A stretch of 64,000 nucleotides of DNA from Oopsacas minuta. Taxonomy: Eukaryota > Animalia > Porifera. The position numbers and the translations under genes are program-made. Below, piece after piece: positions 345 through 61,172 of this stretch; within the stretch, counting starts at the first letter, position 1, and the number at the start of each line of letters is the position of its first letter. Where the stretch lies: assembly GCA_024704765.1 (NCBI GenBank), contig JAKMXF010000336.1, positions 198,599 through 262,598 on the forward strand. The letters are read 5' to 3'. A model generated the notes under the pieces. That model made no database searches. It was given only the letters and a program-made list of their open reading frames with translations, and was not told the origin of the DNA.

Positions 345-1073
345 AAATACACAGTCCCTCATCCTAATGGAGAATGCTGTATCTGTTCAGATGAAGGAGG
401 GCTCAAGCTTAAGTGTGGACATTACATGTGTCCAGATGATATACTAGACAATGCTTGGCAGCAAATAAAAACACTCAAACACGAAATTAGTTGTGCTAGC
501 TGCACAAAAATAGTTGATATTGATGACATCATAATACTTGGACTGCCTAATGATGAAGAGAAGCAATTTCTAACTGCAGCGTTGTCAGTTAACTTCTGCG
601 CCAGCCAAGATATACAACAGTGTATTCGTTGTAAAAGCTATTGTCAGCGTAAAAACGAAGACAGCCCTCAGGTTAATTGTCTTGTCTGTACAAAGAATAT
701 GATTAAACCCTATCTCTTCTGTTGGTATTGTCTTGGAGAATGGAAAAATGCCCCAACTGAAGGCAAAAACTGTGGGAATTCAAACTGCAAGAAAGAAAAG
801 ATCGTACAGCTAAAGTCTGCACCAATGATTGATTTCAAAGATAGGAAAGGAAAAACAGTCAAAGTTCCTAAAATAAGAGCCTGTCCTGACTGCACAACTA
901 TACTTGAACATAATGGTGGTTGCAACGAGATGACATGCGATTATTGCAAGCATATATTTTGTTTTATTTGCTTAACTCCGACTACAAGAGGCAGTCTGAT
1001 TTGCAAGAGTACTACCTGGAACCCAAATGCTACCATAGCCTGTGTACCAGCACCAATACAAGCCAATGTATGA
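345..1073 (+). CDS. RBR (RING1-IBR-RING2) E3 ubiquitin ligase, copy 1; N-terminally incomplete
   Basis: Frame open from 345, with an in-frame TGA at 342. Reads [25 protein letters not shown] (RING1), CIRC..CLVC..FCWYC (IBR), [21 protein letters not shown] (RING2). Nearly identical to 12329-13165. Homology starts abruptly at 355, after a possible CAG acceptor. Confidence 0.85.
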   Translation, partial: KYTVPHPNGECCICSDEGGLKLKCGHYMCPDDILDNAWQQIKTLKHEISCASCTKIVDIDDIIILGLPNDEEKQFLTAALSVNFCASQDIQQCIRCKSYCQRKNEDSPQVNCLVCTKNMIKPYLFCWYCLGEWKNAPTEGKNCGNSNCKKEKIVQLKSAPMIDFKDRKGKTVKVPKIRACPDCTTILEHNGGCNEMTCDYCKHIFCFICLTPTTRGSLICKSTTWNPNATIACVPAPIQANV

Positions 1074-2338: not shown

Positions 2339-3523
2339 ATGACACACCTCTTATACAATGCATATCACATCGCTGTTACATCCCAAAGATTCATTCTCAT
2401 TCCTGCTTTTGTGATTGTATTCTGCTTGACTTTCCTATGGAATATTTACTTCGTAAAGAGAATAATATATTCCGCGAGATTGTACCATGAGTCGATGCGT
2501 TTATCAAAGATAGATACACTCGGAAATTTCATCAATTTGGCATTTCAATACAGAATTGATTTTATCAAATATTCGTTCATGTTAGCTCTCAACATTACTG
2601 AAATCTTAGGTACAATATTCTACGGAATTGGGTATGTAACCTCTGAATATTCCTTCGCAAGAAATACAAGTATTCAATTCCTTGATCGGTTTCAGAACGC
2701 TAGTTGTATTCATGAACTACGTTCACATTTCTTCGTACATTTGGTTCTATTCACTAACATGCCTGTTGGAGCTATGTGTATCGCATTGGGACAGGTTTCA
2801 CTGTTGCTCTCCATTGGTCTATGCATTTGCTTAATGAAGTATATGCATGAAAGTTACTACTTATCGCATAGGATATCCAAATCTTGCAAACGTTTTCTTA
2901 TCCTATCGATTGTATTGAGTGTTATCTTACTAATTCTGGGCTCTGTGCCTCAACTGTTGATGGTTAGAGATATCATTGAACCGATTATTATATTCACATA
3001 CTTTTGTATTTGGTTAAAATACGCTCGCATATTTCATCGCACTTTGAAGCAACAGACAATCGATTTGACTATAATAGATCGATCGGAGGCTAGCATAAAG
3101 AAATCAATTAAAGTGTCTTTTCATTTCGCAGTTATCATGTCTATAAATGCAGTGGGCATTGGCTGCTTCATTTTAGCAGAGACCCTCAGTGAATTTCTGA
3201 ATTTTATCTCAGTTTTACTTTACTTTGGCCCTTGTATCTACACCTATCTATATGGTACAGGAAGATATACACAATTTTTAACAACACCCCAACACATTGA
3301 AGCTCTATTTCAATCCCTCAAGCTACTCGGTACACTCAGTAGTTTATTAGTCACGTTGGCGCCTATATTAATTTGTGCACAGTATATACCTATTACTTTG
3401 TTATTTTTTGGAGCTAATATTTGGAAGGATCTGAAGTCCCGTTTTGGATTTGGAAAACCAATCAGATATAGATATACGCCTAGTCTTGGACAAGGACTAT
3501 TGTCTAAATATGATTTTAATTGA
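2339..3523 (+). CDS. Intronless orphan 7TM (GPCR-like topology) protein, 394 aa
   Basis: About seven hydrophobic segments. Loops 1, 3 and 5 are basic; loop 2 has N-glycosylation sequons and a Cys. Layout matches the 25233 and 54092 genes. Confidence 0.8.
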   Translation: MTHLLYNAYHIAVTSQRFILIPAFVIVFCLTFLWNIYFVKRIIYSARLYHESMRLSKIDTLGNFINLAFQYRIDFIKYSFMLALNITEILGTIFYGIGYVTSEYSFARNTSIQFLDRFQNASCIHELRSHFFVHLVLFTNMPVGAMCIALGQVSLLLSIGLCICLMKYMHESYYLSHRISKSCKRFLILSIVLSVILLILGSVPQLLMVRDIIEPIIIFTYFCIWLKYARIFHRTLKQQTIDLTIIDRSEASIKKSIKVSFHFAVIMSINAVGIGCFILAETLSEFLNFISVLLYFGPCIYTYLYGTGRYTQFLTTPQHIEALFQSLKLLGTLSSLLVTLAPILICAQYIPITLLFFGANIWKDLKSRFGFGKPIRYRYTPSLGQGLLSKYDFN

Positions 3524-4537: not shown

Positions 4538-5697
4538 TTATAACAGGTGTAGTTTGAGATCAGAGATTACACCATTCAGTTTAGCATCTTCAAGTGCTTT
4601 CCTCAATCCATACTTATTGTATTCAGGAACATCAGATGATTCCCCTTGGAGAGGAGCCTTTTGTTTCCACATACTTAGAGTTGCCAAAATTTTGTCTGTG
4701 TTGTTTGGTTTGTCACATATTTGATTATTGTGCTCAGTTACCCCTAAACCAAAACCTACCACTGCTAGCTCTGATAAACGATCTGCAGGAATCTTTTTGG
4801 ATATCTCAAAATGATAAGCATCAGAGATCTCAATAGTCTCTCCTAGAAGAAGTTATAATAATTGACAGTCAACTTTCCTTATATTGAACACTACAGAACT
4901 CAGATAAGACATAGCCACTCAGGAAACAAAAAATATTAAGTAAATAACCGATATACTTCTTATCTGAATATTTTCAAATTCAATTAGCACAAAATTGATG
5001 ATCCTTTATTAAGAAAAGTAAGTCTTAAGCCGAGTACGCATAACCGAGTTATACTGTATCTAGATACCCGCATTATCGAAGTCTAAAATTTTACGAAAGT
5101 GCACCCAAACCGTCATAGTGGCATAAACGTCATCGTTTATATCGAACTCCGCTTATAAATCAAGAATGAACATTTTTGCTTTGGCAATTAGCATGACGTT
5201 TGGCTTATGGCAAGAATATGATATGAAATTTCCCATTTTTTGACGTGACCTTTGTGGGCACATCATCTGGCTACACTGAAATACTGGGAACATTTAGAAC
5301 AGCTAGGAATTTTGCAAAAACTCCAGGAAATTTATTAATGGTTGGGAAGTATGTACATAATCTAATTCTCACTGGTTGGAGGTTGTTCCCTAACGCAGAC
5401 TGAGGAGGGGATTTCTCCACTGGGCGGTGCATATATCCTCATATACTCCTCAACCAAAACCAAACACTCTTTCATTTCCATAACTTTAAAAATCCGGTAG
5501 AGTATATTCACTTTATTCTCTTTATAGTAGCCCTGATCTAGTAAGTCCTTGAATAGGTCTAGGATAGATTTTTTGGAGTCAAATTTATTTTTCAAGAAGC
5601 CAGGTGCTCCCAATGCGAATCTAAACTTCTTAGCGTAATCATCTTTGTCTTTTATAATCCTCACAAGCTCCATCTTTAATTTGACGATCGGATCCAT
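4538..5697 (-). CDS. FADD-like adaptor: death effector domain (exon 5697-5373) plus Death domain (exon 4842-4538), 209 aa
   Basis: Donor ACCA|GTGAGA and acceptor TTCTTCTAG|GA join in phase 1, giving 630 nt. Exon 1 reads ILDLFKDLLDQGYYKENKVNILYRIF (DED-like). Exon 2 reads ISKKIPADRLSELAVVGFGLG..KILATLSMWKQK..GLRKALEDAKL (Death-domain-like). Confidence 0.75.
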
Positions 5698-7029
5698 TAT
5701 CTAAGAATTAGATTAAGTCAATACTCTGTATGAAAATTGCAAACAATACAGTACTGGTTGGTAGAACCATCCACATTGGGTGTCCTGGCTGGCAAGCATT
5801 TGAAACTCTGAAGCCCACTTTTGACATTCGAATTTTACGACTATTTGAGTTCATTCTTAATAAGATTTGTCCTATATTTTTCAGAAAACTTTTTGGCTGT
5901 CTCACTAATGGAATGGAGTATCCGCAGTATGTTTATCCAAGTTTTGCCATATACACCACTATAGTTGCCAACTTTTGAAAATTTCTATCCGTGAGATCGT
6001 CAAGGTTATTGTTATGTATTTTGAAAACGAACTTGTGAATCATTAATACGATTTAGCTACAATAATGACCTAACACAGTTCTCTTCGTGTTAACTTCAGG
6101 GGCATAACATTAGATATTAAAGTGAGAATGCAAAAGTTAAAGTGAGCTCGGGTGTAATCTATGAGGCTTGACAACTATGCACCACATTGCGAGATTCATT
6201 TAACTGTGTGGTCGTCGAAGCAGGCCCTACCTCTACACTATTTTGTGAGGTACCGTACCATGAAAATCCCCGATTCCGAAACTAAATGCAATGTGCGCCG
6301 CTTTTGCAATTTTTAAGTGAATTTGTGTATACAGTTTCATTCAAAATTGTCTCTGCCACCATAAACCCAATAACTTCACCCTGGGGAGTTGCACTATATA
6401 CCGATTTCCCTGGACAAACGCCTGGAACTAAGCCGGATTAGCCAAAAAATCAAACCTACTCAACTCATTTGACTTCTTTCACAACGAATACCGCCACACG
6501 CGAAATTCATTGATACCTCTATGTAAATATCACATAGATACAGTCACTGCCTCGATGCCTGGGGGCAAGACCCTCACAGATACCCAAACTTTCCGCCTAT
6601 GTGTGTACAATCTATAAATATAAATACATAATAGAATTAACCTGCCAACAAATTATAAGATAATCTCAATTACCCACCACTCTACTGTGCATACATTATA
6701 CAAGTATCATATTTCTGTATTATATTTGTAAATTCATTCATCTCTCTAATAACAGTAGAATGAAATGCTGCTGCATACAGAAGACTTGGTAACTCGACCA
6801 GGAACAGAACCATACAAATAGTGTTAATTTAATTCGGAACCAACACCTTTATTCGGCTTAATTGGGTAAAAAGGCCTTGTTCCGATGTGATCCAATATTT
6901 GGTATTTAGTGTTTATGGTTGTAAGCCAATACTCAGGTCATAAGTATTGGTGCAACTGTTTACCAATGTGTTCATTAATTGGTCAACTAGACCAACCTTC
7001 TCTCTAGGTTTGTCCAGGTAACCAATTGA

Positions 7030-7300
7030 TTGCTAGCTTCATATATTTTGTATAGGACAACAGGCACATGTTTCCGATCTTCTTATGACAGTATTCATAA
7101 AGCCCACAATACAAGATGCAAATTGTTGCATAAGTATGCAACAATGTAGGCTTTATGAATACATAGATGATAGATGACACCAGTAGCGCCATACTTTGCA
7201 CATTACATAAAAAAGGCAAGAAGTATAATCTGTCCACGCCCAGGTTATACCCTGTATATCCGGAGCTAGGGCAGATTATACCCCCATGGGTGCAGTTATT
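7030..7300. repeat. Repeat with iterated CAGATTATACCC motif, 3' of each LRR-EGF gene; copies at ~16990-17260, ~24820-25030, ~57350-57600
   Basis: Recurrent GGACAGATTATACC(C/G) units and shared flanking sequence, seen by eye. Confidence 0.65.
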
Positions 7301-7501
7301 ACAAAGATAACACTAAACTAGAGCACACAGCTATTTGTATATACAAAAAGAATCTCTGACTAGATATGAATACAGAGCTTAGAGTTAGTAAGAATCTAGT
7401 ATACATTACTGTGGATGCCTAAATATACACACTATGAGGTTAACCTATAGTATAATCCCTGAGATAGATAATCTAAAGTAAAGTCAATGATGAACTTGAT
7501 A

Positions 7502-10363
7502 TCAGTGTGTCTGCACACTTCCAGAGTAAATTTCTGCAATAAGGTTTGGATCTTTCTTTTCGATTAGTTCAGATTCTATAGCAGTTGTATTCTTCAATTC
7601 ATCAGTCTGTCCTGATTCGTGCATGCAATAAATTTCACTACTATATCCAGCTCTAAGGATTCTATGGTTGTTCGTGGCTTTTCCTTTGAGAATACCTTGT
7701 AGTTTGTTAACCTTTCTGACAAAATACAAGAACAACGCTATAAACATGAGTATTAGGAAAACATTGGACACTAAAGAAATACTCATAAAAATTACTGTTG
7801 GTTGGTACCATTCAAATTGGTTTTGAGGTGAAATGGCTTGTGGCGTAAATGAGGATGTCGGATCTGAAGTTTGATACGTAGCATTTCCTAGCGTATCAAC
7901 ATTGGGGCAAGAAAGATTATGGATAGTGATGTTGAATCCACCTTTACAAGAATATATGTGTTCCATTTCATTAATGCAACTTTTTTCCATCAATTCACAT
8001 TCTATTCCATCCTCACAGTGAGTTTTATTGTAGAGTTGGTGTCCATAATCACAATAACATTCAAATGAACCTATGAAATTTCTACAACCAAACTCACAAC
8101 CTCCATTCCATTCATAACACCCATTTACGTCTTCACAATCATATCCATTTGGAGAAACTGTGTATCCTTCATTACATGTGCAATAGTACGAACCTTCTGT
8201 GTTCTCACAGGCATGCTCACAATTCGTTTCCTCATCGCATTCATCCACATCTTTGCATTCACCTGAATTGTGCAGTGAATAACCAATAGGACAGTTTGTT
8301 GGCGATTCAGTTGATACTGTTGTAGAGGGTAATGTTGAGTCAGGGAAGCTATGGCAAGTCAGATTTGTGATTGTGAGATTGAATCCTCCATGACAAACGA
8401 AGCGATATTCTTCATCACCGCTACTATCTACCACGTCACATTGTATGTTGCTTTCACAATGAGTTTTGTTGATCAGCTGACGACCATCCTGACAATAACA
8501 CAGATATGAACCGATTATATTTTGACATCCAAACTCACATCCTCCATTCCCTTCCTGGCACTCGTTAATATCATCACAAGCATATCCATTAGCAGCTAAG
8601 GTGTATCCTTCATCACAAACACAAAGATATGAACCTTCTGTGTTCTCACAGGCGTATGCACAATCAGTTGCCTCGTTACACTCATCAAAATCTTTGCATT
8701 CACCAGAGTTGTGCAGTGAATATCCTATCGGACAAAAGGTTGGTGATATTGTTGACTGTGCTGTTGAACAAGTTGGCGTTGTAATTGTAGTGCTTTGACA
8801 AGTGAAGTTTGTAATTGTCAGATTGAACCCACCATCACAAATGAATTGATATTCTTCATTGTTACTACTATCAACCACGTCACATTGAATATCGCTCTCA
8901 CAATGAGTTATATTAATCAGCTGATGTCCGTACTCACAATAACACAAATATGAACCTATGGTATTGCCACAACCAAACTCACATCCTCCATTTCCTATCT
9001 TACACTCATTCACATCATCACAAACATATCCATTTGTAGCTAGCTTGTATCCTTCTTCACACACACAATGGTATGAACCTTCTGTGTTCTCACAGACATG
9101 CTCGCATTCAGTTCCCACTCCGCATTCATCTTCATCTACACATTCTCCTGAACTATGTTGTAGATAACCTACAGGGCAACCACAAAAGTAACCATCTTGT
9201 GTATTATGACATACTTGATTACTAGGACAGGTTGTGGACTTGTCAAAGCATTGATATGATTCTGTTTGTGAGCAATTTGTATACAGCTGTGGATTACTAA
9301 TATCTTTGTTGAGGAAATTGTTTGGTTCAGAACAAAAACCATTGTATATATATACCCCATATTGCGATACAATTGACGTCCATTGTAATCTACAATCGCA
9401 GGCGAAAGGGTCGTTTAGATATATGCTGGTTAGTGATTTCATTTGCTGGAAAACATACGGTTCTAGAGTATGATAATCATTGTACTGTAAGGATAGCCCC
9501 ACGACAGATGTGGATTTCAACAGTGCTTCAATAGGAAATTCTGGATTCTCATCTAATCCCAGGTATGTCAATTGAGTTAAACCTTCGAAACCATTATTTG
9601 ATGCAGTCTTTATTCCATTATTTGGAAGATAGAGTCTTAACAGACTTGAGAGTTCACTGAATGTACCATCCTCAATACTACTTAATTTATTTTTGTCAAA
9701 GCTCAGATATGTTAACGAGTTCAAACCATCCAATGCTCCATTAGTTATGCTATTGAAATCTGAGTTATAGAACCTTAGGTAAACCAAGTTTGATAATCCT
9801 CTAACAATTGTGTTATCAAATGTACGCGTGGACGCACCTACTATTCTAACGCTGAGAGACCTTAGATATTGAAGATTTGTAAACGATGGTGTTTCTTTTG
9901 TAATACAATAACCCACGAAGATATATTTTAGACCTGTGAAGTAATTGAAAAAGTTACCAGACTCGAGCTGGATATGATAGTTACTATAAATAGTTATCCT
10001 CCTCAAGCCAGTGTTTTGACTAGATGTAGTTAACCGGATATTGTCATGATCTTGGACATTGTAAATGTTTAATAGTTGGATATTTGAGGCTAATTCTATA
10101 TCAATGATTAGGTTCCCGTATACTGTTGATACGTAGTTTTTGTAGATATATATTGTAACAAACGCTGTACTCTGACCGCTACAGTTGCTTAACAAACTCT
10201 TGATGACCTGAGTATCATTATTGGTGATGTAGCACTGTAGATCGTTACTATAATAATCACAATACCCTGCTCCATTAGAGCAATCGACAGCTTCAACCAC
10301 TGCATAATAATACAAATATGTCACCAAACCTAACAACAGACAGATATTACCGAACTTCCCCAT
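7502..10363 (-). CDS. Intronless type-I membrane LRR-EGF receptor, paralog A (953 aa, 3 EGF modules)
   Basis: Signal peptide, Cys N-cap, LRRs (LxxLxLxxNxL), LRRCT (PFACDCRL), calcium-binding EGF repeats (DxDEC..CxNTxGSYxCxC), S/T/P linkers, TM helix (VIFMSISLVSNVFLILMFIALFLYFV), Tyr-containing tail. Confidence 0.93.
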   Translation of the reverse strand: MGKFGNICLLLGLVTYLYYYAVVEAVDCSNGAGYCDYYSNDLQCYITNNDTQVIKSLLSNCSGQSTAFVTIYIYKNYVSTVYGNLIIDIELASNIQLLNIYNVQDHDNIRLTTSSQNTGLRRITIYSNYHIQLESGNFFNYFTGLKYIFVGYCITKETPSFTNLQYLRSLSVRIVGASTRTFDNTIVRGLSNLVYLRFYNSDFNSITNGALDGLNSLTYLSFDKNKLSSIEDGTFSELSSLLRLYLPNNGIKTASNNGFEGLTQLTYLGLDENPEFPIEALLKSTSVVGLSLQYNDYHTLEPYVFQQMKSLTSIYLNDPFACDCRLQWTSIVSQYGVYIYNGFCSEPNNFLNKDISNPQLYTNCSQTESYQCFDKSTTCPSNQVCHNTQDGYFCGCPVGYLQHSSGECVDEDECGVGTECEHVCENTEGSYHCVCEEGYKLATNGYVCDDVNECKIGNGGCEFGCGNTIGSYLCYCEYGHQLINITHCESDIQCDVVDSSNNEEYQFICDGGFNLTITNFTCQSTTITTPTCSTAQSTISPTFCPIGYSLHNSGECKDFDECNEATDCAYACENTEGSYLCVCDEGYTLAANGYACDDINECQEGNGGCEFGCQNIIGSYLCYCQDGRQLINKTHCESNIQCDVVDSSGDEEYRFVCHGGFNLTITNLTCHSFPDSTLPSTTVSTESPTNCPIGYSLHNSGECKDVDECDEETNCEHACENTEGSYYCTCNEGYTVSPNGYDCEDVNGCYEWNGGCEFGCRNFIGSFECYCDYGHQLYNKTHCEDGIECELMEKSCINEMEHIYSCKGGFNITIHNLSCPNVDTLGNATYQTSDPTSSFTPQAISPQNQFEWYQPTVIFMSISLVSNVFLILMFIALFLYFVRKVNKLQGILKGKATNNHRILRAGYSSEIYCMHESGQTDELKNTTAIESELIEKKDPNLIAEIYSGSVQTH

Positions 10364-12328: not shown

Positions 12329-13165
12329 TCATATGTTGGCTTGTATTGGTGCAGGTATACAGGTTATCGTAGCATTTGGGTTCCAGGTAGTACTCTTGCA
12401 AATCAGACTGCCTTCTTTAGTTGGAATTAAGCAAATAAAACAAAATTTATGCTTGCAGTAATTGCATGTCATCTCGTTGCAACCACCATTATGTTCAATT
12501 ATAGTTGTGCAGTCAGGACAGGCTCTTATACTAGGAACTTTGACTGTTTTGCCTTTTTTATCTTTGAAATCAATCATTGGTGCAGACTCTAGCTGCATAA
12601 TTTTAGCTTTCTTGCAGTTTGAATTCCCACACTTTTTGTATTCAGTTGGGGCAGTTTTCCATTCTCCAAGACAATACCAACAGAAGAGATAGGGTTTAAT
12701 CATATTCTTTGTACAGACAAGACAATTTACCTGAGGGCTGTCTTCGTTTTTACGCTGACAATAACTTTTACAACGAATACACTGTTGTATATCTTGGCTG
12801 AGGCAGAAGTTAACTGACAACGCTGCAGTTAGAAATTGCTTCTCTTCATCATCAGGCAGTCCGAGTATTATGATGTCATCAATATCAACTATTTTTGTGC
12901 AGCTAGCACAACTAATTTCGTGTTTGAGTGTTTTTATTTGCTTCCAAGCATAATCGAGTATATCATCTGGACACATGTAATGTCCACACTTAAGCTTGAG
13001 CCCTCCTTCATCTGAACAGACACAGCATTCTCCATTAGGATGAGGGAATTTTACAGTTCTTTCATAATTCCTCTTCCCGATAAAGTATTCTGCACCTACT
13101 CTAACCTGACTGACTTCAATACCACGATTGTCAAATGCAGATTTAGAAGCACCTAAACTTGACAT
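12329..13165 (-). CDS. RBR E3 ubiquitin ligase, copy 2 (RING1-IBR-RING2 exon, 278-aa ORF)
   Basis: Complete Cys/His scaffold and RING2 catalytic Cys in [11 protein letters not shown]. It is probably the last exon of a gene that includes the Ubl exon at 13869-14065. Confidence 0.9.
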
Positions 13166-13267
13166 TACTATTGCTAACTTGCTATACTATAAAAGTAGCA
13201 GAAATCTACTCAGAAATATTCTCTTTATGTATACGACTATAGACTAGAGGAATGTATACATGTAGGG

Positions 13268-13510
13268 TTCCGTGGGAATGAAAATTTGATCCCCTTTACC
13301 ATCTCATGCACACAGCATTCTCATAGGGATTAGGATTCTCATTACAGGAATTCCCATAGGAATTCCTATGGAATTCTGATAGGAAAATACTAAGTATTCC
13401 CCTACCCATTTCATAATTGTCAACCTGAGTGAAGGAAAAATTGGGCACGGAAAGTATGAATTTAGTGAGACTTCGCGGGACGTAGCACTTGCATTAGACT
13501 GGACTAAGTG
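13268..13510. repeat. Repeat shared with ~21840-22060 and ~61820-62040; its right part is related to the MITE at 24147-24362
   Basis: ATGCACACAGCATTCTCATAG..GATAGGAAAATACTAAGTATTC..CAACCTGAGTGAAGGAAA..GCATTAGACTGGACTA present in all copies. Confidence 0.8.
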
Positions 13511-13868
13511 AACACTGTGCCATGTGTTGGGAATATTTAGCTTTATCATTTATCTAAATAGAAAGCCCTATACTGAAGTTTTCAAATACACAGACGGCAA
13601 ATTTGACAGAAACCCTATATCTTATATCATTATTATATTGGTTAGTCAAGTAGAGACGAGATTAGTACAATTTGTATGGAAGATTCTGCAGTGAATGAAT
13701 ACACTTGTTCAGGCAAGGAATATACCCACCATTAACTTTCTCTTGCAACGCATTGCCAATCTAGTAGTATCTAGTTAAACAGAAGCATCAATACTATATT
13801 TCAAATTGATATTTCAAGTAAAAACACAATAAATAACTCAAATTTTTATCCAGATAGTATGTACTCAC

Positions 13869-14065
13869 TTTCTATTGTAACCACCTGGAAGTCTGGTTAC
13901 AAGCATTATAGTACATTGATCTGAGATTCCATAATCAACTATAGTCATTTTTTTCTCTTGTCGGATATTTTGAAGTTCTTTTCCCACGTATAACAACCGT
14001 TGATGCTCTTCTTGAATCCCACACTTTATGGCAACCTCACATCTGAGTTTAGAAACGGTATAGTC
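13869..14065 (-). CDS. Ubiquitin-like domain exon, not in the ORF track; probable 5' exon of the RBR ligase
   Basis: Acceptor GTTATAG| at 14067-14066 and donor |GTGAGT at 13868. Translates DYTVSKLRCEVAIKCGIQEEHQRLLYVGKELQNIRQEKKMTIVDYGISDQCTIMLVTRLPGGYNR, which aligns to ubiquitin [52 protein letters not shown]. Confidence 0.85.
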
Positions 14066-15737
14066 CTATAACATTGTAAGTAACTAAGTATCATATCAAA
14101 TGTGTTCATACATGCAGAATTACAGGTTACTAAATGGCATTCTCATTGTTTTCTGCTGTATAGACATGTTAATACAAATTTATGAACAATTGATCGACCT
14201 TTTGTCTCCTAATTATTCAATTAGTTTAAATTTTTTCACCTCTAGCTGCGCCACTTTCATGCCAACGGAGCTGTGATAATAACGGGACAGAGGACTGCAG
14301 TTGAAGACAACGTTTAGTAATTACGATACTCTTTACAAACACTGATTTATAAATTTTCGACAAAGTGGTCTAATCATTTAGAAGATAAAGATAAGCCTTG
14401 CACCTTGTATGGAGGGAATATTGATTGGACACGGATTTTGTAATTATGGACCTTCAAAATGAATGCCCTTAATGTTGCGTCATAGATCAATTGATCGATT
14501 CTGATTTTGTTCATATTCAGTGACTATTTGGGGTAGGAATAGGAGCGTAGGGCTCCAAACAAATGTGGGCTCCTTAAATTCATACCCGACAAGGTATTAT
14601 AAAATTTCTCCTACTTTCTTAATGATCACTAAGAATATTTGCTAATTTTCAAAAACATCCAAAGTAATCAAAGAATATATAGTTGATCCTTAATTTGGGC
14701 TAGGAAAATATACTCGCATACCAGAGCCAAAATACATTTTTTGGGTGGTTAAAGGAAATACTGGTGGCCATAGCCAAAAAACTACAGGATGTATTGAGGA
14801 TTGGTGGGATTGCGAGCAAAGCGAGCCAAAACTATACCGAGAGCATTTCGATCCAAATTATTCATCACAATCAACATACAAATGTTAACCATCAAGATTA
14901 AACCGAAAACCAAACTTTTGCAAGAGCTTGAAGTGATTGACATTATTGCAGCCCCACTATTATAGTTATTGTATAGTCTTCCTCAGGCCTTCTTGGACAC
15001 TCCAAGAGTGAATTGTTCTCTCATTCATATCCATGTTAATTTAAACATTGACGATAGCCAAAGGTCTCACATACCAGGATGAGTAATACTATGCTCAACA
15101 TACGCCGGAAAAACATGCACGAAAGATTTGACAAAAGTCTACGGTGGCTACGATACTCAACATTCGCCGAACACATATATATATAAAATCTAGGTTATAG
15201 CAAATACGTAAACATTTACCTGAAATCCTTTTTTCGGAATGACGAAACTGTATGTTTTGTTGCTAAGGCCTATGACAAATATAGTATTCATTGCTAAGAA
15301 TAATAGTATTTACAAAATCTAAAGTATAATTGAATAAATAGATTATTGAATTCAAAATGTTGAATTTAATAAAACTTGAAAGTTTTCAAATCCTGCAAAT
15401 TTGGGAATTTACCAGTTATGGAATCAACTAATCCTAGCAAAACTACATCAATTTAGTCAAAATTAAGAATACAGAGTTTCTTTGTGTTTGGGAAGAATAT
15501 ACATACAGGTGTACTGTGAGAGCATACTATGTGGCAGTTGCATATTATTGTATGCAACCATATCATATAACACATTACTTCATACTCTTATCTACAAATA
15601 TTTCTTAACCAAAAATAGAAATGTATATGAAATTGTAGACTTTGTACAACATTCTAGAAGCTCATAAACTGTGGGAGGGCAGTTTTGTAAATTGGAATGG
15701 TAGGAATTGTAGCAAATATTTTTCAGCACTGGAATAT

Positions 15738-17464: not shown

Positions 17465-20400
17465 TCAGTTTATCTGGTATCTCACAGCTTCATCCTGCAC
17501 ACTTCCAGGATAAACTTCTGCAATAAAGTTTGGATCTTTCTTTTCGATTAGTTCAGATTCTATAGCAGTTGTTTTCTTCAATTCATCAGGCTGTACTGAT
17601 CCGTGCATGTAGTTATAGATTTCATTACTATATCCAGCAGTGGGGATTTTATGGTTGTTCGTGTCTTTTGCTTTGAGTATTCTGCGCATTTTGTTGTTCT
17701 TTCTAACAAAATACAAGAATAAAACGATAAACATGAATATTAGGAAAACATTGGACACTAAAGAGATAATCATGAGAATTACTGTTGGTTGGTACCATTC
17801 AAATTGGTTTTGAGTTGACATGGCTTGTTGCGTAAATGAGGATGTCGGATCTGAAGTTTGATGTGTAGTATTTCCTAGTGTATCAACATTTGGGCAAGAA
17901 TGATTATAGATCCTGATGTTGAACCCTCCTTGACAAATGAAACGATTTTCATGATAACTGCCATCTACAACGTCACATTGTATGTTGCTTTCACAATGAG
18001 TTTCATTGATCAGCTGATGACCATACTCACAATAACATTCAAAAGAACCTATGGTATTTCGACATCCAAACTCACATCCTCCATTCGCTTCTTGACACTC
18101 ATTGACATCATCACAATCATATCTATTTGCTGCTAGCTTGTATCCTTCATCACATAAACAAAGATACGAACCTTCTGTGTTCTCGCAGGTATGCTCACAA
18201 TTTGTTTTGTGATTACATTCATCGAAGTCTAGACATTCACCTGAATTGTGCAGTGAATAACCAATAGGACAATTTGTTGGCGGTTCAGTTGGTTCTGAGG
18301 GTGATGTTGGGTCAGGGAAACTATGACAATTCAGATTTGTGATTGTGAGATTGAATCCTCCTTGACAAATGAAAATATTTTCTTGATATCCACTACCATC
18401 TATCACGTCACATTGTATATTTCTTTCACAATGAGTTTCATTGATCAGCTGATGACCATGCTCACAATAACATTCAAATGAACCTATGAAATTTCTACAA
18501 CCAAACTCACAACCTCCATTCCATTCATAACACTCATTTACATCTTCACAATCATATCCATTTTGAGAAACTGTGTATCCTTCATTACATGTGCAGTAGA
18601 ATGAACCTACTGTGTTCTCACAGGCATACTCACAATTCGTTTCCTCATCGCATTCATCAAAATCTTTACATTCACCTGAATTGTGCAGTGAATAACCAAT
18701 AGGACAGTTTGTTGGCGATTCAGTTGATTCTGTTGTTGAGGGTGATGTTGGGTCTGGGAAGCTATGGCAAGTCAGATTTGTGATTGTGAGATTGAATCCT
18801 CCATGACAAACGAAGCGATATTCTTCATCACCGCTACTATCTACCACGTCACATTGTATGTTGCTTTCACAATGAGTTTTGTTGATCAGCTGATGACCAT
18901 CCTGACAATAACACAGATATGAACCGATTATATTTTGACATCCAAACTCACATCCTCCATTCCCTTCCTGGCACTCGTTAATATCATCACAAGCATATCC
19001 ATTAGCAGCTAAGGTGTATCCTTCATCACATACACAACGATATGAACCTTCTGTGTTCTCACAGGCGTATGCACAATCAGTTGCCTCGTTACACTCATCA
19101 AAATCTTTGCATTCACCAGAGTTGTGCAGTGAATAACCTATTGGGCAAAAGGTTGGTGGTATTGTTGACTGTGCTGTTGAAGTTGTTGACGTTGTAGTTG
19201 TAGTGCTTTGACACGTGAAGTTTGTAATTGTCAGATTGAACCCTCCTTGACAAGTGAAGTGGTTTACTTGATAACTACTACTCTCGACCACGTCACATTG
19301 AATGTCGCTCTCACAATGAGTTTGATTAATCAGCTGATGTCCGTACTCACAATAACACAGATATGAACCTATGGTATTTCTACAACCAAACTCACATCCT
19401 CCATTCCATTCCTGGCACTCATTAGCATCTTCACAATCATATCCATTAATAGCTAGTTTGTATCCTTCTTCACATATGCAATTATATGAACCTTCTGTGT
19501 TCTGACAAGCATATGAACAATTAGTTACTTCAGTGCACTCATTGAAATCTTTGCATTCACCTGAATTATGCAATGAATAACCAATAGGACAACTAGTTGG
19601 TTGTTCTGTTGAAGGTGTTGTTGGTTCAGTGATGCTTTGACAAGTCAGATTTGTGATAGTTAAGTTGAACCCTCCTTGACAAGTGAAGCGGTTTTCTTGA
19701 TAACCACTACTATCGACCACGTCACATTGAATATCGCTCTCACAATGAGTTTCGTTATACAATCGGTGTCCTTGCTCACAGTAACATTGATATGAACCTA
19801 TGGTATTCCCACAACCAAACTCACATCCTCCATTTCCTATCTTACACTCATTCACATCATCACAAACATATCCATTTGCAGCTAGCTTGTATCCTTCATC
19901 ACACACACAATGGTATGAACCTTCTGTATTCTCACAGACATGCTCGCATTCAGTTACTACATCGCATTCATCTTCATCTACACATTCTCCTGAACTATCT
20001 TGTTGATAACCTACAGGACAACTACAAAGGTAACCATCTTGTGTATTATGACATACTTCATTACTGGGACAGGTTATGGACTTGTCAAAGCATTGATAAG
20101 ATTCTGTTTGTGAGCAATTGGTATACAACAGTGGATCAGTAATAGACTTTTGGAAGAAAACGTTTGGTTCAGAACAATATCCATTACTTGTATATACCCC
20201 ATATTGCGATACAATTGACGTCCATTGTAATCTACAGTCGCAGATGAACGGGTCATTTAAATATATATTTATGCTTGGTGATTTCATTTGCTGGAATACA
20301 TATGAGTCTAGAGTATGATACTCATTGAACAGTAAATATACATCTCTTAGAGATCTTGTATGTATCAGTGCTTCAATAGGGAATCCTGGATTCTCATCTA

Positions 20401-21208
20401 ATCTCAGTTCTGTCAGTTCAGTTAAACCTTCGAATACATTATTTGATATAATCTTTATTCCATTATTTTGAAGATAGAGTCTTGACAGACTTGAGAGTTC
20501 ACTGAATGTACCATCCTCAATAATACTTAATTTATTGTTTTCAAAGCTCAAAAGTGTTAACGAGTTCAAACCATCCAATGCTCCTTTAGTTATGCTACTG
20601 AAATCCGAGTTGTAGAAACTTAGGTGAACCAAGTTTGATAATCCTCTAACGATTGTGTTATCAAATGTACGCGTGGACGAACCTACTATTCTAATGTCGA
20701 GATAAGTTAGAAATTGTAGATTTGTGAAATATGGTGATTCTTCTGAGATACAATTACCAATGTAGATAGATTTTAGACCAGTGAAATAATTGAAAAAGTT
20801 CCCAGACTCGAGTTGGATATGATAGGCATTATCTATAACTATCCTCGTTAATCCAGTATTCTGACTTGAGGTAGTTAAACGGATATTATCTTTATCTATA
20901 CCATTGTAAATGTACAACGTTTGGATATGTGAGGCTATTTCTATATCGACGATTAGATTCCCGTATACTGTTGATGTGTAGTCTTTGTAGACATATATTG
21001 TAAAAAATGCTGTGCTCTGAACGCTACAGTAGCTTAACAAACCCTTGATAACCTGAGTTTCATTATTAGTGATGTAGCAATTGAGGTAGGAACTATAAAA
21101 ATCACAATAACCTGCTTCATTAGAGCAACTGGGAGCTTCAACCACTCCATAATAGCACAAATATGTCACCAAACCTAACAACAGAGAGATATTTCCGAAC
21201 TTCCCCAT
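17465..21208 (-). CDS. Intronless LRR-EGF receptor, paralog B (1247 aa, 5 EGF modules)
   Basis: Same architecture as paralog A. Tail ends EVYPGSVQDEAVRYQIN. Confidence 0.93.
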   Translation of the reverse strand: MGKFGNISLLLGLVTYLCYYGVVEAPSCSNEAGYCDFYSSYLNCYITNNETQVIKGLLSYCSVQSTAFFTIYVYKDYTSTVYGNLIVDIEIASHIQTLYIYNGIDKDNIRLTTSSQNTGLTRIVIDNAYHIQLESGNFFNYFTGLKSIYIGNCISEESPYFTNLQFLTYLDIRIVGSSTRTFDNTIVRGLSNLVHLSFYNSDFSSITKGALDGLNSLTLLSFENNKLSIIEDGTFSELSSLSRLYLQNNGIKIISNNVFEGLTELTELRLDENPGFPIEALIHTRSLRDVYLLFNEYHTLDSYVFQQMKSPSINIYLNDPFICDCRLQWTSIVSQYGVYTSNGYCSEPNVFFQKSITDPLLYTNCSQTESYQCFDKSITCPSNEVCHNTQDGYLCSCPVGYQQDSSGECVDEDECDVVTECEHVCENTEGSYHCVCDEGYKLAANGYVCDDVNECKIGNGGCEFGCGNTIGSYQCYCEQGHRLYNETHCESDIQCDVVDSSGYQENRFTCQGGFNLTITNLTCQSITEPTTPSTEQPTSCPIGYSLHNSGECKDFNECTEVTNCSYACQNTEGSYNCICEEGYKLAINGYDCEDANECQEWNGGCEFGCRNTIGSYLCYCEYGHQLINQTHCESDIQCDVVESSSYQVNHFTCQGGFNLTITNFTCQSTTTTTSTTSTAQSTIPPTFCPIGYSLHNSGECKDFDECNEATDCAYACENTEGSYRCVCDEGYTLAANGYACDDINECQEGNGGCEFGCQNIIGSYLCYCQDGHQLINKTHCESNIQCDVVDSSGDEEYRFVCHGGFNLTITNLTCHSFPDPTSPSTTESTESPTNCPIGYSLHNSGECKDFDECDEETNCEYACENTVGSFYCTCNEGYTVSQNGYDCEDVNECYEWNGGCEFGCRNFIGSFECYCEHGHQLINETHCERNIQCDVIDGSGYQENIFICQGGFNLTITNLNCHSFPDPTSPSEPTEPPTNCPIGYSLHNSGECLDFDECNHKTNCEHTCENTEGSYLCLCDEGYKLAANRYDCDDVNECQEANGGCEFGCRNTIGSFECYCEYGHQLINETHCESNIQCDVVDGSYHENRFICQGGFNIRIYNHSCPNVDTLGNTTHQTSDPTSSFTQQAMSTQNQFEWYQPTVILMIISLVSNVFLIFMFIVLFLYFVRKNNKMRRILKAKDTNNHKIPTAGYSNEIYNYMHGSVQPDELKKTTAIESELIEKKDPNFIAEVYPGSVQDEAVRYQIN

Positions 21209-24362: not shown

Positions 24363-25232
24363 CGTTATATTCATTAAGACAATTTCAAAAGTGGAATTGT
24401 ATTTTACTTGTTGATTTATGAATATAATGATTCCGTAAAATTCTTAGAGATTTATGGAAATTTTCCCTCTTAACCGACTTCTACCTATTTCAGATTTCGA
24501 GTTTTCTCAGCTAACATGTATAGTAAATAATATTCTAGCTAAAAGTTGTATATCTTAATCACCCTATTGCTCTGAATACAAACCTGGGAGCTTTCTAATT
24601 CGTGAGCATTTTTTGTCGCGTAAATTTTAACAAAATTCAATTAGAGGCTGTGATAAATATTATTCACAATTCTTGGTGGGATTTCTAGACTCCAGTTTAA
24701 CAGCCTAGATTAACCTCCCCACTTTTTGTAAGAAATAATGTTAGTTCTATGGGGCATGAGTCAGTATAGCCGCCCCACTTTTCATGGGCTTCCATCCTGC
24801 CCACCATATGTGATGCAAATTTGTTGCATGTAACAAGGGTAATATACATGGTGTAACAATGTTATGTTGTGTTTTCAAGCAACAATTTGTATCGTGAATA
24901 GTGGGCTTTACGAATACATAGATAACACCCACACTTTTTACACATGACATAATAAGGGCAGGGAGTATATTTTGTTCTAGCGCAGATTATACCCGAGTAT
25001 ACTCTGGGCTGCTACACCGGGTTCGTACCTATACTTATATTATATCCCATTGGATATCTTGAAATTTGATACATAGGTATCTATACACTTTTAAGATGAA
25101 TATCATTAAACAAAATATGTAAGATATATGATGTTACAATTAATTAGAGAATTTCTAATTCATTACTTAATTATTGTAAGTCTTGAAGAACTATAAATAT
25201 TCTAGAATTTTGTAATATAGAATATCTTGAAA

Positions 25233-57800: not shown

Positions 57801-60800
57801 TCAGTTTATCTGGTATCTCACAGCTTCATCCTGCACACTTCCTGGATAAACTTCTGCAATAAGGTTTGGATCTTTCTTTTCGATTAGTTCAGATTCTATA
57901 GCAGTTGTTTTCTTCAATTCATCAGGCTGTGCTGATCCGTGGATGCTGTTATAGATTTCATTACTATATCCAGCTGTGGGGATTCTATGGTTGTTCGTGT
58001 CTTTTGCTTTGGGAATCCCTTGTAGTTTGTTAACCTTTCTAACAAAATACAAGAATAATGCTATAAACATGAATATTAGGAAAACATTGGACACTAAAGA
58101 GATAACCATGAGAATTACTGTTGGTTGGTACCATTCAAATTGGTTTTGAGTTGACATGGCTCGTGGCGTAAATGAGGATGTCGGATCTGAAGTTTGATGC
58201 GTGGTATTTCCTAGTGTATCAACATTGGGGCAAGAAAAATTCTGGATAGTGATGTTGAATCCTCCTTGACAAATGAAACGATTTTCGTGATAACTGCTAT
58301 CAACCACATCACATTGTATGTTGCTTTCACAATGAGTTTTGTTGATCAGCTGATGACCATCTTGACAATAACACAGATATGAACCGATTATATTTTGACA
58401 TCCAAACTCACATCCTCCATTCCCTTCCTGGCACTCGTTAATATCATCACAAGCATATCCATTAGCAGCTACAGTGTATCCTTCATCACATGCACAACGA
58501 TATGAACCTTCTGTGTTCTCACAGGCGTATGCACAATCAGTTGCCTCGTTACACTCATCAAAATCTTTGCATTCACCAGAATTGTGCAGTGAATATCCTA
58601 TCGGACAAAAGGTTGGTGGTATTGTTGACTGTGCTGTTGAAGTTTTTGGCATTGTAATTGCAGTGCTTTGACAAGTGAAGTTTGTAATTGTCAGATTGAA
58701 CCCACCATCACAAATGAATTGATATTCTTCATTGTTACTACTATCAATCACGTCACATTGAATATCGCTCTCACAATGGGTTTGATTAATCAGCTGATGT
58801 CCGTACTCGCAATAACACAGATATGAACCTATGGTATTTCTACAACCAAACTCACATCCTCCATTCCATTCTTGGCACTCATTAGCATCTTCACAATCAT
58901 ATCCATTAATAGCTAGTTTGTATCCTTCTTCACATATGCAATTATATGAACCTTCTGTGTTCTGACAAGCATATGAACAATTAGTTACTTCAGTGCACTC
59001 ATTGAAATCTTTGCATTCACCTGAATTATGCAATGAATAACCAATGGGACAACTAGTTGGTTGTTCTGTTGAAGGTGTTGTTTGTTTAGTGATGCTTTGA
59101 CAAGTCAGATTTGTGATAGTTAGGTTGAAACCTCCTTGACAAGTGAAGCGGTTTTCTTGATGACCACTACTATCGACCACGTCACATTGAATGTCGCTCT
59201 CACAATGCGTTTGATTAATCAGCTGATGTCCGTACTCGCAATAGCACAGATATGAACCTATGGTATTTCTACAACCAAACTCACATCCTCCATTCCATTC
59301 CTGGCACTCATTCGCTTCTTCACAATCATATCCATTAATAGCTAGCTTGTATCCTTCTTCACATATGCAACTGTATGAACCTTCTGTATTCTGACAGGCA
59401 TATGTACAGTTAGTCACCTCATCACATTCATCGAAATCTTTACATTCACCAGAATTGTGTAGTGAATACCCAATGGGACAACTAGTTGGTTGTTCTGTTG
59501 AAGGTGTTGTTGGTTCAGTGATGCTGTGACAAGTCAGATTTGTGATAGTTAGGTTGAAACCTCCTTGACAAGTGAAGCGGTTTTCTTGATAACCACTACT
59601 ATCGACCACGTCACATTGAATATCGCTCTCACAATGAGTTTCGTTATACAATTGGTGTCCTTGCTCACAGTAACATTGATACGAACCTATGGTATTACCA
59701 CAACCAAACTCACATCCTCCATTTCCGACCTTACATTCATTAACATCATCACAAACATATCCATTTGCAGCTAGCTTGTATCCTTCATCACACACACAAT
59801 GGTATGAACCTTCTGTGTTCTCACAGGTATGCTCGCATTCAGTTACTACATCACATTCATCTTCATCCACACATTCTCCTGAACTATGTTGTAGATAACC
59901 TATAGGGCAACCACACAAGTAACTATCTTGTGTATTATGACATACTTGATTACTAGGACAGGTTATCAATTTGTCAAAGCATTGATAAGATTCTGTTTGT
60001 GAGCAATTGGCATACAACAGTGGATCAGTAATAGACTTTTGGAAGAAAACGTTTGGTTCAGAACAATACCCATTACTTATATATACCCCATATTGCGATA
60101 CCATTGACGTCCATTGTAATCTACAGTCGCAGATGAACGGGTCGCTTAAATATAGATATATGCTGCTTGGTGATTTCATTTGCTGGAATACATACGGGTC
60201 TAGGGTATGATACTCATTGTACTGCAAGAGTACATACCTTAGAGATCTTGTATTTATCAGTGCTTCAATAGGGAATCCTGGATTCTCATCTAAATTCAGG
60301 TATGTCAGTTCAGTTAAACCTTCGAAAACATTATTTGATATAATCTTTATTCCATTGTTTTGAAGATAGAGTTGTAACAGGCTTGAGAGTTCATTGAATG
60401 TACCATCCTCAATGATACCTAACTTATTGTTTTGAAGATAGAGAGATAGCAGACTTGAGAGTTCATTGAATGTACCATCTTCAATAATACTTAATTTGTT
60501 GTTTGCAAAGCTCAGATATGTTAACGAGTTCAAACCATCCAATGCTCCTTTAGTTATGCTACTGAAATCCGAGTTGTAGAAATTTAGGTAAACCAAGTTT
60601 GATAATTCTCTAACTATTGTGTTATCAAATGTACGCGTGGACGCACCTACTATTCTAACGCTGAGAGAACTTAGATATTGAAGATTTGTAAACGATGGTG
60701 TTTCTTTTGAAATACAATAACCCAAGTAGATATATTTTAGACCTGTGAAGTAATTGAAAAAGTTTTTAGCCTCGAGCTGGATATGATAGCTACTACTAAC

Positions 60801-61172
60801 AGATATCCTCGTTAATCCAGTATTTTGGCTAGATGTAGTTAGACGGATATTATCTCGATCTTCGTAATTGTAAATGCGTAAATATTGGATATTTGAGGCT
60901 AATTCTATATCAATGATTAGGTTCCCGTATACTGTTGATACGTAGTTTTTGTAGACATATATTGTAGAAAATACTGTACTCTGACCGCTACAGTAGCTTA
61001 ACAAACTCTTGATGACCTGAGTTTCATTATTAGTGATGTAGCACTGTAGATAGCTACTACCATAATTACAATACCCTGCTCCATTAGAGCAATCGACAGC
61101 TTCAACCACTCCATAATAATACAAATATGTCACCAAACCTAACAACAGGCATATATTACCGAACTTCCCCAT
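57801..61172 (-). CDS. Intronless LRR-EGF receptor, paralog C (1123 aa, 4 EGF modules, one extra LRR)
   Basis: Same architecture as A and B. The 24-aa LRR L(S/Q)LYLQNN..IIEDGTFNELSSL is duplicated. Confidence 0.93.
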   Translation of the reverse strand: MGKFGNICLLLGLVTYLYYYGVVEAVDCSNGAGYCNYGSSYLQCYITNNETQVIKSLLSYCSGQSTVFSTIYVYKNYVSTVYGNLIIDIELASNIQYLRIYNYEDRDNIRLTTSSQNTGLTRISVSSSYHIQLEAKNFFNYFTGLKYIYLGYCISKETPSFTNLQYLSSLSVRIVGASTRTFDNTIVRELSNLVYLNFYNSDFSSITKGALDGLNSLTYLSFANNKLSIIEDGTFNELSSLLSLYLQNNKLGIIEDGTFNELSSLLQLYLQNNGIKIISNNVFEGLTELTYLNLDENPGFPIEALINTRSLRYVLLQYNEYHTLDPYVFQQMKSPSSIYLYLSDPFICDCRLQWTSMVSQYGVYISNGYCSEPNVFFQKSITDPLLYANCSQTESYQCFDKLITCPSNQVCHNTQDSYLCGCPIGYLQHSSGECVDEDECDVVTECEHTCENTEGSYHCVCDEGYKLAANGYVCDDVNECKVGNGGCEFGCGNTIGSYQCYCEQGHQLYNETHCESDIQCDVVDSSGYQENRFTCQGGFNLTITNLTCHSITEPTTPSTEQPTSCPIGYSLHNSGECKDFDECDEVTNCTYACQNTEGSYSCICEEGYKLAINGYDCEEANECQEWNGGCEFGCRNTIGSYLCYCEYGHQLINQTHCESDIQCDVVDSSGHQENRFTCQGGFNLTITNLTCQSITKQTTPSTEQPTSCPIGYSLHNSGECKDFNECTEVTNCSYACQNTEGSYNCICEEGYKLAINGYDCEDANECQEWNGGCEFGCRNTIGSYLCYCEYGHQLINQTHCESDIQCDVIDSSNNEEYQFICDGGFNLTITNFTCQSTAITMPKTSTAQSTIPPTFCPIGYSLHNSGECKDFDECNEATDCAYACENTEGSYRCACDEGYTVAANGYACDDINECQEGNGGCEFGCQNIIGSYLCYCQDGHQLINKTHCESNIQCDVVDSSYHENRFICQGGFNITIQNFSCPNVDTLGNTTHQTSDPTSSFTPRAMSTQNQFEWYQPTVILMVISLVSNVFLIFMFIALFLYFVRKVNKLQGIPKAKDTNNHRIPTAGYSNEIYNSIHGSAQPDELKKTTAIESELIEKKDPNLIAEVYPGSVQDEAVRYQIN

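Follow-up and report, generated by a model that had tools for sequence, protein, structure and literature searches.

Diversifying selection on the concave-strand residues of a tandem LRR-cbEGF gene family, encoding putative surface receptors, in the glass sponge Oopsacas minuta

The variable lymphocyte receptors (VLRs) of lamprey and hagfish carry a capped horseshoe of leucine-rich repeats (LRRs), in which an N-terminal cap (LRRNT), the LRRs, and a C-terminal cap (LRRCT) follow one another, with diversity on the concave strands and a variable number of LRRs. The germline copy of a VLR gene is incomplete; it is completed by somatic assembly with flanking cassettes, and the protein is held by a glycosylphosphatidylinositol (GPI) stalk. 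Plant LRR receptor-like proteins (RLPs) and resistance (R) genes, such as Cf-4/Cf-9, have an LRR ectodomain, one transmembrane (TM) helix, and a short tail that lacks a kinase. They lie in tandem clusters that exchange segments and are under diversifying selection at the exposed x residues of the xxLxLxx motif; signalling through a co-receptor is the working model. In the Toll-like receptor (TLR) families of the sea urchin, comparison of models M7 and M8 showed positive selection at sites that lie mainly in the concave beta-strands, with a few sites in LRRNT and LRRCT (Buckley and Rast, 2012; PMC3367398). HyLRR-2 of Hydra is an LRR membrane protein that lacks a TIR domain and is reported to work with a separate, TIR-bearing protein, HyTRR; an LRR-Ig-EGF protein has been noted in the demosponge Amphimedon (PMC6043800). 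Canonical LRR-TIR TLRs are not reported in the sponges studied so far, and sponge surface recognition receptors are poorly known (PMC6043800). In this study, we analysed 64,000 nucleotides of GC-poor eukaryotic DNA from the glass sponge Oopsacas minuta (assembly GCA_024704765.1, contig JAKMXF010000336.1, positions 198599-262598; hereafter the window), which contain three LRR genes, named A, B, and C. With a probability of roughly 0.78, these genes belong to a tandemly amplified family of single-pass surface receptors, whose LRR domain has been diversified on its concave face and which would together serve as a recognition repertoire.

Genes A (7502..10363, 953 aa), B (17465..21208, 1247 aa), and C (57801..61172, 1123 aa) are intronless open reading frames (ORFs) on the minus strand, and A is identical to a gene called on JAKMXF010000336.1. 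The order of parts is common to the three proteins: a signal peptide, a four-Cys LRRNT, LRRs, a CxC-type LRRCT, an EGF domain, calcium-binding EGF (cbEGF) modules, a TM helix, and a tail. The Pfam matches were LRR_8 (E=2.5e-19 in A), EGF_CA, cEGF, and FXa_inhibition. The LRR ectodomain is encoded on the minus strand by 9248..10282 in A (residues 28-372; Cys-capped LRRNT, LRR1-10, and LRRCT, supported by alignment and by an AlphaFold2 model), 20090..21127 in B (residues 28-373), and 59979..61091 in C (residues 28-398). It holds 10, 10, and 11 LRRs, respectively, and the repeat length is 22-26 residues. The caps are marked by invariant C28, C35, C44, and C61 before LRR1 and by C322-x-C324, C344, C364, and C372 after LRR10. 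The domain is a generic capped extracellular LRR domain of metazoans, of the 'typical' 24-residue class. The stalk regions (7800-9230 in A, 17790-20080 in B, and 58130-59970 in C, minus strand) contain 3, 5, and 4 modules of ~140 aa, respectively, and each module combines a pair of cbEGF domains with a Cys-rich FNLTITN unit and a linker rich in Thr and Pro. The TM helix of A (residues 856-882, 7718..7798, minus strand) is a hydrophobic stretch that is kept in genes A-E of the family described below. It is followed by a cytoplasmic tail of 71 aa (7505..7717, minus strand) that has no signalling-domain match; the tails of A, B, and C are about 70-80 residues long.

A search with the LRR region identified 11 O. 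minuta paralogs, including A, B, and C, with 75-80% identity. JAKMXF010000336.1 carries eight of them, of which three are plus-strand genes located upstream of the window and five are minus-strand genes; the remaining three are on contig JAKMXF010000340.1. Each of the 11 is an uninterrupted ORF in a single exon, from the start codon to the tail. About 65 more relatives were found in other ENA assemblies; they are 45-59% identical to A, the median pairwise identity inside each other-assembly group is about 70%, and no 1:1 orthologues stand out among them. The closest named relative after the family is Slit (30% identity across 44% of the query). The family is not described in the genome papers of O. 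minuta or Aphrocallistes vastus, nor in the sponge LRR/EGF literature searched. Arrays of the family in two other assemblies also contain broken LRR-EGF gene fragments (13173-14276, 17591-18628, and 18816-20583 of locus L007; 8234-9348 of locus L006), and these broken copies indicate birth-and-death turnover. One related array carries a DDE transposase gene.

This architecture was set against the described types. No TIR, Death, or kinase domain was found by Pfam in A, B, C, or the isolated tail (TIR at E<=0.05), and the sole Pfam match of the isolated tail was sub-threshold and was judged meaningless. Membership of the TLRs was therefore rejected, and the sponge proteins were not detectably nearer to TLRs than to other extracellular LRR proteins. 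Proteins of the Slit, Vasorin, and Nogo-receptor type are of the same LRR class, with caps and 24-residue repeats, and Slit and Vasorin carry EGF domains after their LRRs. They gave the best fold and sequence matches, yet at only 15-30% identity, and they do not form a rapidly diversifying tandem family. Slit (four LRR domains, EGF, LamG, and a cystine knot, secreted) was rejected because the sponge proteins have one LRR domain and a TM helix and show no LamG or CTCK match. Vasorin (a single EGF, fibronectin type III (FN3), TM) was rejected because of the missing FN3 match, the 3-5 cbEGF modules, and a fold match confined to the LRR domain. The plant RLPs share with the sponge proteins the LRR ectodomain, the single TM helix, and the short kinase-less tail; the likeness is convergent, as the plant proteins have another LRR subclass, lack an EGF stalk, and belong to another kingdom. 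Hydra HyLRR-2 and the Amphimedon LRR-Ig-EGF protein are, like the O. minuta proteins, TIR-less LRR membrane proteins of non-bilaterians, but they are encoded by single or few genes and do not form a diversifying family. Neither Hydra nor Amphimedon was represented among the homologues (E<=1e-5, within the length range searched).

The LRR register was fixed from the conserved hydrophobic and Asn pattern alone (LxxLxLxxN). The repeats start at residues 95, 120, 145, 167, 193, 217, 241, 265, 287, and 311 of A, and positions 2, 3, 5, 7, and 8 of the motif were taken as the 'x' class. The alignment of the 11 close paralogs covers 340 codons, has no gaps, and is anchored in its register by invariant Leu and Asn. 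An earlier note on this DNA, made from the letters alone, had claimed that differences among A, B, and C concentrate on the x positions of the concave sheet within 9330-10290. This interval corresponds to residues 25-345 of gene A, that is, to its LRR domain, and all peptide strings quoted in support of the claim are found in the translations of A, B, and C. The concentration was confirmed by column counts: among A, B, and C, 28/48 x columns (58%) are variable, versus 66/292 other columns (Fisher p=2e-6), the latter made up of 7/38 in the core, 27/134 in the remaining LRR, and 32/120 in the caps. Across the 11 paralogs, 41/48 x columns vary, versus 133/292 others (p=1e-7), and the mean entropy is 1.05 bits at x versus 0.33 bits in the remaining LRR. 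Entropy by repeat position is 1.6, 1.45, and 1.1 bits at positions 3, 5, and 7, respectively, and 0.2-0.3 bits at positions 1 and 4. The convex-side stretches, which the note had called nearly invariant, are indeed near-invariant among the paralogs.

Codon-level selection was examined in the 11 close paralogs using a likelihood program written for this analysis (Goldman-Yang codon model, GY94+F3x4), which reproduced the IQ-TREE log likelihood of model M0 (lnL -5044.738) exactly. By pairwise counting with the Nei-Gojobori method (NG86), the mean nonsynonymous divergence (dN) of x codons was 0.304, versus a whole-domain synonymous divergence (dS) of 0.214; x-codon dN exceeded whole-domain dS in 51/55 pairs, and omega (dN/dS) of non-x codons was 0.45. 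In fixed-sites models on a single tree, omega of the x codons (omega_x) was 1.95-2.6 versus 0.50 elsewhere, and omega_x=1 was rejected (p=8e-10). When the partition rate was left free, omega_x was 2.1-2.6 versus 0.50 (p=4e-4), and the synonymous rate of x codons was fitted at 0.84-0.92 times that of the other codons. Because the synonymous rate is similar at x and other codons, the excess is specific to amino-acid change. Six segment-specific trees, fitted by block-coordinate optimisation, gave omega_x of 2.03 versus 0.52 (p=6e-7). Tree-free estimates from 12 random sets of five disjoint pairs gave omega_x of 1.41-1.92 versus 0.43-0.50 (p=5e-3 to 2e-7). The concave dN/dS thus stands above the background, at about 2 versus 0.5, and the variable sites are not scattered. 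Site models of the M7/M8 type, the check that had been proposed for a codon alignment of the paralogs, also gave a selection signal, with about 9% of sites at omega near 5; twice the log-likelihood difference (2dlnL) was 141 for M1a/M2a and 157 for M7/M8, values that are inflated by recombination.

With branch lengths fixed, omega at repeat positions 1-5 was 0.50, 1.43, 5.09, 0.34, and 2.58, and at positions 6-9 it was 0.65, 1.80, 0.34, and 0.77; positions 14-24 ranged from 0.19 to 0.49. The variable set of the earlier note therefore holds for positions 3, 5, and 7, is weak at position 2, and fails at position 8, which is conserved. Taken as a single class under a free rate, positions 3/5/7 had an omega of 3.0 and a synonymous-rate ratio of 0.99 (p=6e-5); this class was picked after the O. 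minuta data had been inspected. Omega was 0.2-0.35 on the convex side, 0.69 in the N-cap, and 0.49 in LRRCT. The first EGF region, used as a control, had an omega of 0.30 and is under purifying selection. The last 150 codons, which encode the TM helix and the tail, had an omega of 0.80 among genes A-E. These results support positive diversifying selection on the concave strand residues and purifying selection on the scaffold, the convex face, the caps, and the EGF stalk (omega 0.2-0.7). For the earlier claim of a ligand-binding surface under diversifying selection, the selection part is upheld by omega_x above 1 in several models and in a second assembly, and ligand binding may be inferred from it.

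Of the 20 M2a sites with posterior >0.9, 12 fall within the 48 x codons (Fisher p=9e-7). The other eight are residues 38, 40, and 43 of the N-cap, residue 103 just past the LRR1 strand, residues 136, 150, and 177, and residue 340 of LRRCT. M8 added residue 128, which sits inside the long LRR2 strand of the AlphaFold2 model (A residues 122-133). In gene A, all strands being encoded on the minus strand, the LRR1 strand (IQLLNIYNV, residues 95-103, 10055..10081) has an x-site omega of 3.35 and the M2a sites 97, 99, 101, and 103. The LRR2 strand (LRRITIYSN, residues 120-128, 9980..10006) has sites 124 (M2a and M8) and 128 (M8 only), and the LRR3 strand (LKYIFVGYC, residues 145-153) lies at 9905..9931. 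Site 171 belongs to LRR4 (LRSLSVRIV, residues 167-175, 9839..9865), and sites 195 (M2a and M8) and 199 (M8 only) belong to LRR5 (LVYLRFYNS, residues 193-201, 9761..9787). One site each is found in LRR6 (LTYLSFDKN, residues 217-225, 9689..9715; site 219), LRR7 (LLRLYLPNN, residues 241-249, 9617..9643; site 243), and LRR8 (LTYLGLDEN, residues 265-273, 9545..9571; site 267). LRR9 (VVGLSLQYN, residues 287-295, 9479..9505) has an x-site omega of 4.35 and sites 288, 289, and 291. The strand at LRR10 and the start of LRRCT (LTSIYLNDP, residues 311-319, 9407..9433) is not diversified (omega about 1.0).

Gene conversion has turned the paralogs into mosaics. Recombination was detected by the pairwise homoplasy index (PHI) test (p<=0.001), the nearest neighbour of each paralog shifts along the gene length, and the maximum-likelihood tree of the paralogs is weak, with bootstraps of 27-62% on most nodes. 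A run-length permutation test placed conversion tracts at residues 83-115 (shared by E and K), 28-72 (J and K, 100% identical), and 343-369 (A and E); genes E and K are about 75 kb apart on opposite strands. As the paralogs are mosaics, the likelihood ratio tests (LRTs) of the site models were discounted, and the analysis relied on the fixed-sites, segment-tree, and tree-free tests. Recombination of this kind raises an alternative in which a wrong tree for mosaic paralogs, the alignment, or local mutation or conversion at strand codons mimics selection; recombination is real here, and site-model LRTs are known to be inflated by it. This artefact is nonetheless highly improbable. The synonymous-rate ratio of x or hot codons to the rest is 0.84-0.99, so the excess is amino-acid specific; omega_x stays at 1.4-1.9 without a tree and at 2.0 with six segment trees; and the columns are gap-free, with a register taken from invariant Leu and Asn. 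Repeats have been gained as well. Relative to A and B, C has a 24-residue insertion, which is one LRR added by internal duplication; the two tandem 72-nt LRR units (aa 229-252 and 253-276; 60345..60488, minus strand) are identical at 58/72 nt. Further diversity is added to the family by LRR duplication, by variation in EGF-module number, and by the exchange of segments through gene conversion or unequal crossing-over.

The selection analysis was replicated in a second assembly. In five close paralogs from tandem arrays of ERZ25069837 (loci L005 and L007), omega_x was 1.8-2.85 versus 0.5 (p=0.0016-0.006). Here the 3/5/7 class is out-of-sample, having been defined on the O. minuta genes, and its omega was 2.5-4.9 (p=9e-6 and 0.001). 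L006_19933 and L005_454 were left out as overly divergent or as lying outside the family. At the protein level, the 3/5/7 entropy pattern is present in both other-assembly groups. The statistical strength of the result comes from the 11-gene family and this replicate rather than from A, B, and C alone.

Residues 26-385 of A were modelled with AlphaFold2 from a family alignment of 61 sequences; the mean pLDDT was 91.9 and the pTM was 0.90. In the model, each canonical repeat contributes a single short strand at positions 3-5, and the strands of LRR1-4 are longer. By established LRR geometry, a strand whose Leu at position 4 faces the core would turn positions 3, 5, and 7 outward, onto the concave sheet. 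Two residues are enriched at the hot positions: Tyr makes up 29% of positions 3/5/7 versus 6.4% elsewhere (odds ratio 6), and Arg 13% versus 2.2% (odds ratio 6.9). Such a Tyr/Arg-rich composition is typical of protein-binding hot spots, and the paratope of VLRs is Tyr-rich as well. The set of hot residues is unique to each paralog, no two being alike. Foldseek matched the model to the Nogo receptor, LRRTM2, and LGR4 with a probability of 1.0. The nearest solved or predicted folds, at 15-24% identity, were the Nogo receptor, LRRTM2, NGL-3, LINGO-1, LGR4, FLRT, VLR and TLR4 hybrids, Connectin, and Vasorin.

That the closest folds and sequences include adhesion and neuronal LRR proteins (Nogo receptor, LRRTM2, NGL, LINGO, FLRT, Connectin, and Vasorin) would fit a diversified 'address code' for adhesion or development rather than non-self recognition. 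The proteins would then serve cell-cell or cell-matrix pairing in the syncytium, or gamete or larval settlement, in the manner of Drosophila Connectin, Tartan/Capricious, and neuronal LRR adhesion proteins. Stalks of cbEGF modules are typical of proteins that act in adhesion or in the matrix, and a tail without an immune signalling domain agrees with this. Adhesion codes are, however, usually kept as orthologues between species, whereas this family shows birth-and-death, pseudogene fragments, omega >1, and members in other assemblies that are only 45-59% identical to A without evident 1:1 counterparts. Turnover together with omega >1 is a pattern more typical of conflict, be it between host and microbe, in allorecognition, or in reproduction. 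We consider an address code unlikely, though it deserves attention.

Gene A appears to be transcribed. It is present, in assembled contigs, in four runs from one sample (X1-X4). The unique contigs of runs X2 and X3 have an even depth of about 70, and those of X4 are less even (about 80-340); these three are read as DNA runs. The unique contigs of X1 have a depth of about 1000-1400 within gene A versus 12-18 in the 5' flank. One X1 contig has a 66-nt gap (6612-6677) with CT..AC ends, which are GT..AG on the minus strand.

Several points weigh against a positively selected, expressed receptor family. The NG86 omega of x codons, calculated on their own ~25 synonymous sites, was 1.16. In the strictest model, with six segment trees and a free partition rate, omega_x was 1.56 versus 0.52 (p=0.039). 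The A/B/C pairs alone gave omega_x of 1.4-2.0 versus 0.38-0.55, which is marginal (p=0.17, 0.048, and 0.012). The site-model LRTs carry the inflation by recombination described above. In the older divergent array L006 (ERZ25072730), omega_x was 0.7 versus 0.33, above the background and below 1; this array is uninformative for omega >1 because its tree is near-saturated, with about 6 neutral substitutions per codon. The concave placement of the hot positions is taken from the DSSP strand register of the model and from general LRR geometry. The assignment of X1 as RNA is a guess from the spliced contig and the uneven depth, and the receptor function is one that we infer from the evolutionary signature. 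Three of these points, namely the NG86 value of 1.16, the p value of 0.039 in the strictest model, and the omega_x of 0.7 in the older array, would also suit relaxed constraint, in which redundant young paralogs drift fastest at exposed strand residues and no positive selection acts; in most LRR families, constraint is weakest at the solvent-exposed x positions. Drift, however, cannot give omega >1, and omega_x=1 was rejected by the single-tree, segment-tree, and tree-free tests and in the second assembly. Omega is 3-5 at the 3/5/7 positions, the odds ratios for Tyr and Arg are 6-7, all 11 ORFs are intact, and equally exposed convex positions have an omega of 0.2-0.35. Relaxed constraint alone is thus disfavoured, and we regard it as improbable.

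With diversifying selection retained as the preferred explanation, the family displays the traits of diversifying LRR multigene families: a tandem birth-and-death array, strand dN/dS >1, a conserved scaffold, and exchange among paralogs. In evolutionary behaviour, the sea-urchin TLRs are the closest parallel, as they likewise form large families whose LRR receptor genes are closely related. Their selected sites lie mainly in the concave strands, as in the sponge genes, which are intronless and tandem. The sponge proteins depart from the sea-urchin TLRs in lacking a TIR domain, in having a cbEGF stalk that separates LRRCT from the membrane, and in coming from a non-bilaterian animal. With the VLRs, the sponge family has in common the capped LRRNT-LRR-LRRCT horseshoe, the concave-strand diversity, and the variable LRR number, and the sponge LRR domain matched VLR-derived chains, among others, in sequence and fold. 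The VLRs differ in being somatically assembled, whereas 11/11 sponge genes are complete ORFs; where VLRs have a GPI stalk, the sponge proteins end in a TM helix and a tail. Exchange in the sponge is evolutionary gene conversion, and there is no hypervariable LRRCT insert (LRRCT omega 0.49). VLR membership was rejected because all 11 paralogs are germline-complete, and the concave diversity is a likeness in working only. The label 'VLR/TLR-like' of the earlier note is therefore sound as an analogy for concave diversification and wrong as a statement of membership, given the absence of TIR, the complete germline ORFs, and the lack of any sign of VLR-style assembly. In plant RLP and R genes, the same combination of tandem exchanging clusters and diversifying selection at the exposed x residues is known.

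Other features were observed in and around these genes. The tails of A, B, and C (7505-7717, 17468-17704, and 57804-58040, minus strand) are otherwise divergent and share two tyrosine motifs: an IYNSI-like one near the membrane, and one at the C terminus that reads DYQTL, DYETL, or RYQIN. Both also occur in paralogs on loci L002 and L003. These motifs could be sorting or SH2-docking signals. Just downstream of the stop codon of A, 6200-7407 (minus strand) is covered by X1 contigs at about one tenth of the gene A depth; this region, which holds the 66-nt gap, is either an intron-bearing 3' untranslated region of A or the 5' exons of the next gene. Variant letters occur at four sites of the LRR region (9402, 9418, 9860, and 9923) and may be alleles or cross-mapped paralogs. 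Between the receptor genes are IBR-domain ORFs, pieces of RBR-type E3 ubiquitin ligases (426-1073, plus strand; 12329-13165, minus strand), and similar IBR genes flank paralogs on loci L003 and L004. A 111-aa ORF (5362-5697, minus strand) has a sub-threshold match to the death effector domain (Pfam E=0.009; 16.7 bits versus a cutoff of 35.9). Three plus-strand ORFs of 286-394 aa (2339-3523, 25227-26357, and 54092-54952) are multi-pass-membrane-like and have no Pfam match. Exon-sized ORFs at 41273-51788 (plus strand) resemble, by eye, laminin-type EGF, fibronectin III, and LamG-like pieces, which suggests a large usherin-like gene with introns. A long ATGT/ATAC microsatellite at 33050-33500 gives spurious CMYV and HTYI repeat ORFs in several frames.

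In the proposed working of the family, the capped LRR horseshoe would sit at the tip of a rigid stalk of cbEGF modules and mucin-like, Thr/Pro-rich linkers and be held above the membrane. Ligands would be bound by the concave face, to which the N-cap hairpin may contribute. These ligands would be variable and may be microbial molecules, non-self or allogeneic tissue, or fast-evolving endogenous partners. Signalling or uptake would proceed through a partner protein or through the conserved tyrosine motifs of the tail. Exchange of segments and the gain or loss of LRR and EGF modules give each gene a unique combination of concave residues. By analogy with the known systems, an immune or allorecognition role may be proposed. 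Sponges reject allografts and manage dense microbial contact. It is possible, and we suggest tentatively, that the family is the glass-sponge counterpart of TLR/VLR recognition, a germline repertoire of dozens of TIR-less LRR-cbEGF receptors, whose diversity would be maintained by positive selection and by the shuffling of LRR segments between tandem copies. With it, syncytial sponges would tell microbes or allogeneic tissue from self, and the receptors would act through a separate signalling partner, as HyLRR is reported to do with HyTRR.

If this counterpart holds, diversified LRR-based non-self recognition would be placed in the sponge lineage, among the earliest animal branches. The hot positions are direct targets for binding and structural experiments. 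The recipe of a conserved LRR scaffold, hypervariable strand residues, and exchange among paralogs, already known from plant resistance genes and sea-urchin TLRs and, in a somatic form, from lamprey VLRs, operates in an early-branching animal lineage. Amplified, recombining, under selection on the concave face, and apparently expressed, this family is a concrete candidate for a set of sponge recognition receptors.

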